From the NCBI GenBank assembly GCA_964035545.1, contig OZ037770.1, forward strand, positions 558,001 to 622,000: DNA of 64,000 bases, in the 5' to 3' direction. Under the pieces are notes generated by a model that was given only the letters and a program-made list of their open reading frames with translations, had not been told where the DNA came from and made no database searches. Below are positions 1 to 2,715 of the stretch, in pieces (the stretch's first letter is position 1; every line of letters starts with the position of its first letter). The translations under genes and the position numbers were made by a program. This stretch comes from Bugula neritina (lineage: Eukaryota; Animalia; Bryozoa).

Positions 1-2715
1 TTACCCCAGGTCTGTTTTCCAACTTTAGCTAACAACAAAAAAGTAACATTGGCCGTTGTAAAATCAGACGCTAAAACAGGCAGGACAAACGAGTGACTTT
101 GCATCAGTGTGACTTGTGAAAAGTTTAGTTGCATATATATAGTTCAATCTCTAAAACTGCTCTTGGCGTGTTTGAAACTACTTTTACAAAAAATGGATTA
201 GTTGATAGATTCTAACATTGTTTATAGTAAAGCAAAATCCAATTCAATTTCTGAAAGCTTACAAATGCAAAATATACAATACGTATCAACAACACAGTTA
301 TTGCGTTATAAAAATACCATTCAAGAGAAAATAGTACTGCCTTAATTATTTAATTAGAGTAGCTTAGGCCACTAAAGATTATTATGTGGAGAATTGTCTT
401 AAGTTTAGTTAAAGAAATGCAACATTTCATGCAAGGTTTCCCAAAGATGGGAATTTAGAACATACCCTACAAGAAAATGCTTATCTCAAAACTAAAAAAA
501 AATCAAGTTGACTCTGGTTTGCTGCTAAATAAAGTGAAACCAGCTAATGATTTCTTATAACCAACTTACTCTGCAAACGCGTCTAGCTTTTCAGTAGCGT
601 AAATAAAATTTGATATCATCTCATCAATTTGTAGCAAACTGGGAATTACTGAGACAAAAACGTTTGAAGTTTAGCGGGTTTCGTTATTGCAAGCATGATT
701 GTAGCTATAGTAAAGTTTCGCTCTAAGCATTATAACTGCAGAAGTGAGTTAATAATAATTACCTGTAACTCTTTGTTCTTGTTTACTCCCTACGACAGAA
801 TATTTAACTACTAGCCCATTATAGAAAGATTCCTTGCCTGAAGACTGTTTGGCTGGTGGTGGATTTATATAAACACGAAAACTCCCACTTTCGCCATTTG
901 AAACCAGAAACTTTTTAGCTCTCATTGGAGCTGAATTTAACAAACATAATATAATAATATTTAATATCTAATTCAAATTAATTGGAGGTATAAGTGTAAT
1001 GGTGTATTTTTTGTTATATAGCATGTCAGCTAAACCTGATCTAACTATATTATGTACGTGCGATTATTTTAAAATGATTGTTTGAAATTGAAGTCAAATA
1101 TTGCAGTTGGAAATTGCTTAACTTCAGAAAAAAGCACAATTGAAACTACACCTGGTTATATAAGCAAGTTTAAAGCAATTACCAATGTTTCTGAAAGCTG
1201 TTTCTTCTACCCGTATTTCTGTGCCTTTGTAATTATAAGCATAAAATGTCAACTGATACCTTGCTCCGGGTGCCAAGTCAGGGAACTCTGCCTTTACCAA
1301 GAATAACTCTATAGTTTATAGCATAACTGAAATAAGTTTTCTTTCTCTCTCTCTCTCTCTCTCTCTCTCTCTCTCTCTCTCTCTCTCTCTCTCTCTCTCT
1401 CTCTCTCTCTCTCTCTCTCTCTCTCTCTCTCTCTCTCTCTCTCTCTCTCTCTCTTTCTCTCTCTCTCTCTCTCTCTCTCTCTCTCTCTCTCTCTTGTTCT
1501 CTCTCTCTCTCTCTCTCTCTCTCTCTCTCTCTCTCTCTCTCTCTCTCTCTCTCTCTCTCTTTCTGATTTTTTCTTGTCCCAAGTCTTGCTAAGTTGTACT
1601 TACAGCAAATGTTCTTTTAGGTTTAAAAGCAGTCACTACAAAGTCGTGAGGATGTGTGTATAATTTGATGCGTTTTCCCTGAAGATAGAACTGACAGTAC
1701 ATATACAACAAGGCTCCGCGAGGAGTTACTCCAAGAGTTATATCTCCCTTCAGAGTAAATTTTTCTTCTTTCAACTGATAAAAATTCAAAGCTTCTTCAA
1801 TCACTCTACAGCAGAACAAATGTTCATATTATATAATTTATTTTTTCGAAAGTAGAAAATCTTGTAGTAGTTTTGCGCTATTAACTACTAATGGTGGATT
1901 ATGCATGAATGAGAGGCAAGAACATAACTCCTTGAACCTATTCAAGAGTAAGAACTGTAATTGATTTGCGTATGAAATTGTATGTTTAGAACTAACAAAT
2001 GAAAGAGAGGTTGAGATAAAATAATATAGCACAGAACTGCACATTCTACTCTATTTAAGTGTCACTGGGTGTACTGAATGTCCTGCTAACATAACGGACT
2101 TTCAGTCTCATTGGTCATGTGGGTTCCGGTCAAGTAGTCGCAATGAAGGCCGCCATGCAGCCATGTTGCATCCCAGACTGTTGCCAAGTGGCTAGTAGTG
2201 AATAAAACATTTAGAATATGAATGAATTTAGGCTAAGTTTCAAAGGCAGTGCAGGGTGGAGGGTAACAGAACAATTCCTATGCAGTCATCACAATATCTC
2301 CACAATTTTGTGCTATTTAAAAACTTACTATTGAAAGTTATTTAAAAGAGAAAAACACTCTTTTAGTTTGTATCTTTTTTCACAATTTAGGCTGTATGTT
2401 AGTCAAAACTGATTATTTCCTTATTTTTTGCCGCAAGTTTACTTTACGCTGGTTTGTCAAATTTATGAGTGTCACAAAATTTTACAGGTATAAGTCAAGT
2501 TGACACAAATTTGTCACACAGTCAATGTTTTATAGGTGTAAGTTGAATATATATTTTCATTGTGATATAATTTAATCATACAAAATTGATTTGTATGAAG
2601 TGCATTACAGCATGCAGACTTATTCTTATACTCACGGCCAGGACTCATATTCATAGTCATCCGAGAATGTTAGTTGATTCAACCACATAATAATGATAAA
2701 CCTTACAATAGTCAT
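1..2715 (-). CDS. G4: FN3-repeat type I membrane protein paralog, 5' part only (signal peptide, FN3-like domain 1, most of domain 2); continues beyond the left edge
   Basis: Hand-spliced GT-AG exons 2715-2636 (MTIVRFIIIMWLNQLTFSDDYEYESWP), 1805-1604, 1291-1183 (AEFPDLAPGARYQLTFYAYNYKG, FN3 E/F-strand motif), 930-763 and 28-<1. Phases are compatible and match G1-G3. Near-identical to the G3 5' region. Confidence 0.85.
1344..1560. repeat. (CT)n/(GA)n microsatellite, G4 intron 2
   Basis: Direct inspection. Confidence 0.98.

Follow-up and report, generated by a model that had tools for sequence, protein, structure and literature searches.

The window, a stretch of 64,000 nt of the bryozoan Bugula neritina, lies within an array of 18 related tandem genes that covers about 205 kb when the window is extended by 100 kb on each side. 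The joined-exon translation of gene G4 was used as query for a local tblastn search on these 264 kb, after which the list of genes was established anew from the single exons. Genome-wide profile searches of the 216-Mb genome revealed exactly 18 copies each of exon 2 and exon 13, all of them inside this cluster. Where the gene plan is resolved, it consists of 15 exons: a signal-peptide exon precedes six beta-sandwich domains, each encoded by two exons, and the gene ends with a transmembrane exon and one for the short basic tail. The array genes are single-pass receptors with one Ig-like tip (D1), five FN3-like domains, a transmembrane segment and a short tail.

Four genes within the window are encoded on the minus strand and one on the plus strand. 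G4 starts with exon 1 (2636-2715), which encodes the signal peptide (ATG, hydrophobic stretch, GT donor), followed by exon 2 (1604-1805), which covers D1, the membrane-distal domain, up to its sixth or seventh beta-strand, exon 3 (1183-1291), encoding the last D1 strands, exon 4 (763-930), encoding the first half of domain 2, and the start of exon 5 (1-28); exons 5-15 run on beyond the window in L003 (G000:C6:548001-558000). Intron 2 contains a (GA)n microsatellite (1337-1564) that is found at the same position in several paralogs. The paralog G3 comprises a head of exons 1-6 (33694-36729), with exon 2 at 35623-35824, and a stalk with transmembrane segment and tail encoded by exons 7-15 (3413-33414). 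Its frames are open, the G3 exons being joined solely for this frame check, and introns 9 and 12 carry large insertions. Further paralogs on the minus strand are G2 (42260-51503; exon 2 at 48702-48498, position of exon 1 tentative) and G1 (53959-61812; exon 2 at 60311-60098), while exons 1-4 of H1 (62396-64000; exon 2 at 62964-63168) are on the plus strand and the gene runs on beyond the window. A G1 intron contains a long tandem array (57358-57940) based on a 6-bp unit with a higher period of 54 bp.

The insertion in G3 intron 9 amounts to about 21 kb at one point compared with G2 (11344-32319); it contains no ORF of at least 150 aa, is strongly strand-skewed at 22-24 kb, and could contain a concealed nested gene or render G3 non-functional. 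The insertion in intron 12 is an LTR retrotransposon on the minus strand (5045-9874) with 328-bp LTRs that are 98% identical and with reverse transcriptase, RNase H and integrase, its pol being split over two ORFs. It sits at the exon-12 donor, whose own sequence forms the 5-bp target duplication; the GT is kept. A second LTR element lies between G2 and G3 (37748-42100), and as its 198-bp LTRs are identical, it was inserted very recently.

Database searches and structure predictions were run exon by exon. Exon 2 alone yields an all-beta model (pLDDT 82) with an Ig-like sandwich that matches generic Ig-like sandwiches only (best Z 5.7), with FN3/monobody and bacterial Ig-like domains as weak matches; exon 3 completes D1 with an FN3-type LxPGxxY motif, and D1 carries extra strands relative to FN3 domains. 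For the exon 13 model (pLDDT 88), FN3 domains dominate the hit lists (best Z 6.5), and the FN3 beta-sandwich topology is present, the Z-scores being middling and the domain partial; comparison with FN3 domains of MPL, LAR and NCAM gave Z 6.1-6.5 and rmsd 2.1-2.5 over 65-71 residues. The curated cut-off of Pfam fn3 (PF00041) was not reached by these half-domains (exon 3: E=0.039, 14.6 bits vs 25; exon 6: E=0.079). The array proteins thus resemble FN3 receptors such as RPTP and cytokine-receptor ectodomains in the FN3 matches of exon 13 and in the P/W/Y and LxPGxxY motifs, and differ from them in scoring below the fn3 cut-off, in having no phosphatase or kinase domain and in the extra strands of D1. 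No ITAM was found in the tails of G2, G3, G4, H6, C and G5 (34-54 aa); the G4 tail contains two tyrosines, which are outside the ITIM consensus. Sequence searches of the ESM Atlas and the PDB with exon 2 and metagenome scans gave no match, protein searches returned short unnamed exon fragments only, and literature searches found no description of this receptor family. Five of the 18 genes look broken, i.e., G5, H3, H6, B and C. In-frame stops are present in exon 2 of H3 (L015, near 84200 on the window scale) and in exon 4 of G5 (L003, near 970), exon 8 of H6 is inverted (L018:4164-3994), and exon 8 of gene B and exon 6 of gene C were not detectable.

The sequences of window positions 1-3000 and 34048-37050 were aligned. 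G3 and G4 are about 98.5% identical over a head of about 2.8 kb (1-2786 in G4, 34048-36800 in G3, outside the microsatellite); identity drops to 93% in exon 5 and 83% in exon 6 and is at the level of unrelated paralogs from exon 7, and the upstream flank is 76% identical. A recent duplication of the whole gene was rejected, as the stalks are only 30-49% identical. The nearest paralog of G3 is G4 for exons 2-6, and G2, H6 and G1 for exons 7-14. Furthermore, once its LTR element is disregarded, the spacer between G2 and G3 is colinear at 74-78% with that between G3 and G4. This switch of the nearest paralog together with the colinearity of the spacers is the product expected of an unequal crossing-over in intron 6, which joined a G4-type head to a G2-type stalk. 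Judged from the sequence, G3 is an old chimera of this kind, G2 representing its stalk lineage. With a dS of about 0.2-0.25 the chimera is far older than a divergence of 1.5% indicates, so the head tract was reset by a later interlocus gene conversion that brought about 2.8 kb of both heads to 98.5% identity. After this conversion, G3 and G4 were the sole pair in the array with a common tip. As the intron baseline is set by conversion and not by the age of the duplication, it does not provide a clean neutral clock.

Within this tract, exon 2 stands out. The original prediction had counted 11 differences in the 202 nt of exon 2 between G4 (1805-1604) and G3 (35824-35623), nine of them non-synonymous, and both numbers were borne out (5.4%), as were the exact residue pairs F8L, Q10H, E13G, G43R, I46F, K47T, D54Y, T58N and A67T (exon-2 numbering). 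The substitutions are located at 1781, 1775, 1767, 1727, 1678, 1669, 1665, 1645, 1632, 1628 and 1606. For the introns, for which about 13 differences each had been claimed in about 830 bp and about 735 bp, we counted 12 of 828 plus one indel in intron 1 (1.45%) and 12 of 760 in intron 4 (1.58%); pooled introns without the GA repeat differ at 28 of 1898 sites (1.48%). The single silent change in exon 4 and the single E/K change in exon 3 were likewise recovered. In exon 1 the reported indel of two codons is present (6 nt), and one I/F change and one silent change have to be added to the earlier list. Exon 5, which for G4 lies mostly beyond the window, differs at 10 of 144 sites because the near-identical tract decays there.

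A Fisher test of exon 2 against the pooled introns, proposed along with the prediction, yielded p=7.4e-4, so that the excess in the exon is significant. As the exon was chosen post hoc, the 44 differences were shuffled over the 2551 aligned sites, and the probability that any 202-nt window reaches 11 was 0.035. In intron 1, the 202-nt window with most differences contains eight substitutions and one indel, close to the density of exon 2. Zero differences were found in the 164 nt of intron 1 and the 41 nt of intron 2 adjoining exon 2. The excess is exon-limited and located in the membrane-distal domain. G3 and G4 thereby show two features of a divergence peak under gene conversion: they are old duplicates that share one tract of much higher similarity than the sequence around it, and within this tract divergence has a local maximum in a coding exon (p=7e-4 raw, 0.035 after scan correction).

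The reads of sequencing run X1, compared without the GA repeat, contain both versions of exon 2. Over 1576-1708 two 133-nt contigs were obtained, one with no difference to G4 (depth 31) and the other with seven (depth 25), which is the number that separates G3 from G4 in this interval. Sequencing errors, which the original prediction had named as an outcome that would refute it, therefore do not account for the differences. It is very improbable that base-calling errors, uncollapsed haplotypes or a misassembly account for the two heads: the identity of 98.5% falls within the range of allelic differences and the whole stretch is spanned by no single read or contig, but the short-read contigs hold both exon versions at about single-locus depth, the 3' halves are only 30-49% identical in protein and the upstream flanks of G3 and G4 differ by 24%. 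Run X1 possibly derives from the assembled individual and is then not independent evidence of fixation. In this one run the exon-2 differences agree with the assembly over 1576-1708 and look mosaic at 1767-1781, where one contig among the matches listed (contig 3) appears G3-type at 1767 and G4-type at 1775 and 1781, the contigs collapsing variants. This mosaic contig, among the matches listed, suggests a third haplotype and continuing exchange between G3 and G4. In runs X2 and X3, exon 2 was not covered at 82% likeness. At 2691, run X1 contains a signal-peptide variant (I to V) that both G3 and G4 of the assembly lack.

Orthologous fragments were found in JGI records labelled AY690838, an accession that appears in the paper on the mitochondrial genome of Bugula neritina (PMC2678162). 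Because these fragments are 72-91% identical in DNA, they probably originate from a sibling species of the Bugula neritina complex (PMC4183541). Only one version of the G3/G4 exon 2 was found in this sibling lineage, and its orthologue L030 was used to polarize the changes. The G4 branch has seven replacements and no silent change, the G3 branch two of each. Five of the G4-derived replacements (R43G, F46I, T47K, Y54D and N58T) form a patch of 47 nt (1632-1678, minus strand), whose residues fall in loops and short strands that follow the conserved F39 strand. Decay of G3 as a pseudogene was rejected as cause of the excess, since the excess sits on the G4 branch and the G4 reading frame is open.

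The original prediction had concluded that the excess implies positive selection or an exon-limited conversion. No third-paralog donor exists: among the 18 exon-2 copies in the genome, all in the cluster, only that of G3 is close. The exon-confined excess is real, but an implication of positive selection is too strong, since the ratio of nine to two is neutral-like (p=0.41), an omega of 1 is not exceeded significantly and the site models detect no class under selection. For exon 2 of the G3/G4 pair, dN is 0.063, dS 0.039 and omega 1.64 (not significant); seven replacements to no silent change on the G4 branch give p=0.12. In a branch model, selected post hoc, omega of G4 is above the background (p=0.02) and differs from 1 at p=0.10, so that dN/dS significantly above 1 was reached neither in the pair nor on the G4 branch; a Fisher test of branch by class gave p=0.036. 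Calibrated on the introns, nine replacements stand against 2.2 expected (p=4e-4), i.e., above the neutral intron rate, and seven against 1.1 expected on the G4 branch (Poisson p=1.4e-4), both under the assumption of a single age for the whole tract. Without conversion about 11 silent changes and about 15 replacements would be expected in exon 2, where two and nine are observed. The codon site models, for which our own implementation was used and for which saturation and alignment limit the power, gave no class with omega>1 in exon 2 (M2a vs M1a, M8 vs M7/M8a), with LRT values of 0.0 and 0.03 on 24 sequences (all paralogs) and 2.04 on shallow clades. An M2a signal in exon 6 (LRT 16.3, the sole significant exon) was not trusted because conversion breakpoints lie there.

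Selection as cause of the excess is hinted at, not proved. The best reading, to which we give an even chance, is a divergence peak like that of the opsins, in which selection re-separates the two paralog tips against conversion. Selection would favour replacement differences in D1, or shield them from conversion, mostly on the G4 branch, and produce the exon-limited peak. Judged from the architecture, the D1 domains would most likely differ in the extracellular partners that they bind, either microbial or on cell surfaces, and the repertoire would be diversified between paralogs and not between alleles. A neutral origin is plausible, though we consider it less likely: the tract may be a patchwork of conversions of several ages of which two small exon-2 patches escaped the last round by chance, or a redundant duplicated head may have drifted at an omega near 1 under relaxed constraint. 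The stepwise identity at the 3' end of the tract shows tracts of several ages, six differences in 51 nt match the older level, at least nine replacements among 11 changes have a probability of 0.05-0.10 at an omega of 0.41-0.5, and the scan-corrected probability is 0.035. The resemblance of contig 3 to a G3/G4 mosaic also points to ongoing exchange, and the broken genes to common turnover. Arguing against this neutral origin, the differences in the introns show no overdispersion when binned by 100 nt (p=0.81), relaxation by itself cannot lift the rate above that of the introns, and the excess is on the G4 side, where it is purely non-synonymous.

Moreover, exon 2 is an outlier across the whole family. 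It is the most divergent exon among the paralogs (23% mean identity vs 37-53%), and among exons 2-14 of the 16 other genes it has the lowest identity to the nearest paralog. In the pairs B/C and H4/H5, exon-2 omega is 0.83-0.96 and pN about 0.25, vs 0.06-0.09 in exons 3-14. In the close pairs other than G3/G4 both dN and dS of exon 2 are raised, as if the exon resisted homogenization. The nine positions changed between G3 and G4 are no more variable across the paralogs than others (p=0.37).

In the comparison with the sibling lineage, omega of exon 2 is 0.41 vs 0.31 for the stalk exons, which is not significantly higher. Exon 3 has an omega of about 1.0 (p=0.005 vs stalk), partly resulting from low dS, and the F-G end of D1 encoded by it may be a more promising candidate for diversification than exon 2. 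Exon-2 polymorphism within the sibling lineage amounts to no replacement and five silent changes, in orthologues of two paralogs other than G3 and G4 and in three to four samples, while nearby introns of these samples differ by 1-3%. The allelic hypervariability expected from the proposed role in self-recognition was not seen in the few alleles examined.

In Hydractinia, allelic variability of the Alr proteins peaks in the first domain (bioRxiv 10.1101/2022.03.25.485889). The array resembles the Alr genes (PMC9546547) in that single-pass receptors and pseudogenes of a colonial animal are clustered at one place in the genome, with exon 2 encoding the distal, most variable domain and with an FN3-like fold. 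Alr proteins combine V-set/I-set Ig domains with a single FN3-like domain, many of their tails carry ITAM/ITIM motifs, and their alleles are extremely polymorphic; in the array genes the stalk has five FN3-like domains, the tails are short and basic, and it is the paralogs rather than the alleles that vary. Exon-by-exon searches found no sequence homology between them, and the extreme Alr-type polymorphism of domain 1 was absent from the orthologues of two paralogs in three to four samples. Balancing selection as in Alr or MHC, with deep allelic lineages of D1, a different G4 allele as conversion donor and a role of the locus in colony self-recognition, appears improbable to us. This Alr-like layout speaks for it, as does the third combination that run X1 seems to carry at 1767-1781 (inferred, among the matches listed). 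Against it, over 1576-1708 the G4-type and G3-type sequences of X1 are those of the assembly, though X1 possibly represents the assembled individual, and exon 2 has no replacement polymorphism in the sibling-lineage samples. Literature searches found no bryozoan allorecognition gene, though allorecognition occurs in the phylum. It is rather unlikely, though conceivable, that the array constitutes an undescribed bryozoan FN3-like recognition repertoire in which crossing-over and conversion recombine heads with stalks, with G3 and G4 caught as selection re-separates their tips; such a repertoire could serve colony self/non-self or symbiont recognition.

A divergence peak under gene conversion is known from exon 5 of the human red/green opsins and from the Teshima-Innan model (PMC3924837). 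Alike are the tandem duplicates tens of kb apart, the homogenized introns and the exon that stands out by replacement differences. The opsin peak is fixed, common to several species and tied to a tested function, whereas that of G3/G4 is small (5.4% vs 1.5%), has been observed in a single assembly and a single run, and has most silent sites homogenized too. The evolutionary pattern itself is of a well-known type and the statistics are marginal at present. If selection is confirmed, G3 and G4 would provide a small testable case of a receptor array that holds specificities apart against gene conversion, with nine candidate specificity residues named in an undescribed family. In clustered protocadherins, the recognition domains reportedly stay paralog-specific while other parts are homogenized by conversion. 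The array likewise has distinct putative recognition domains in its paralogs despite conversion elsewhere; it differs in its unrelated fold and in its separate multi-exon genes without common constant exons. Exon 11 of G4, B and C (L003:6645-6794, L008:8980-9129, L006:984-1133) is 91-94% identical although these genes are distant, and appears from this identity to be another short conversion tract.
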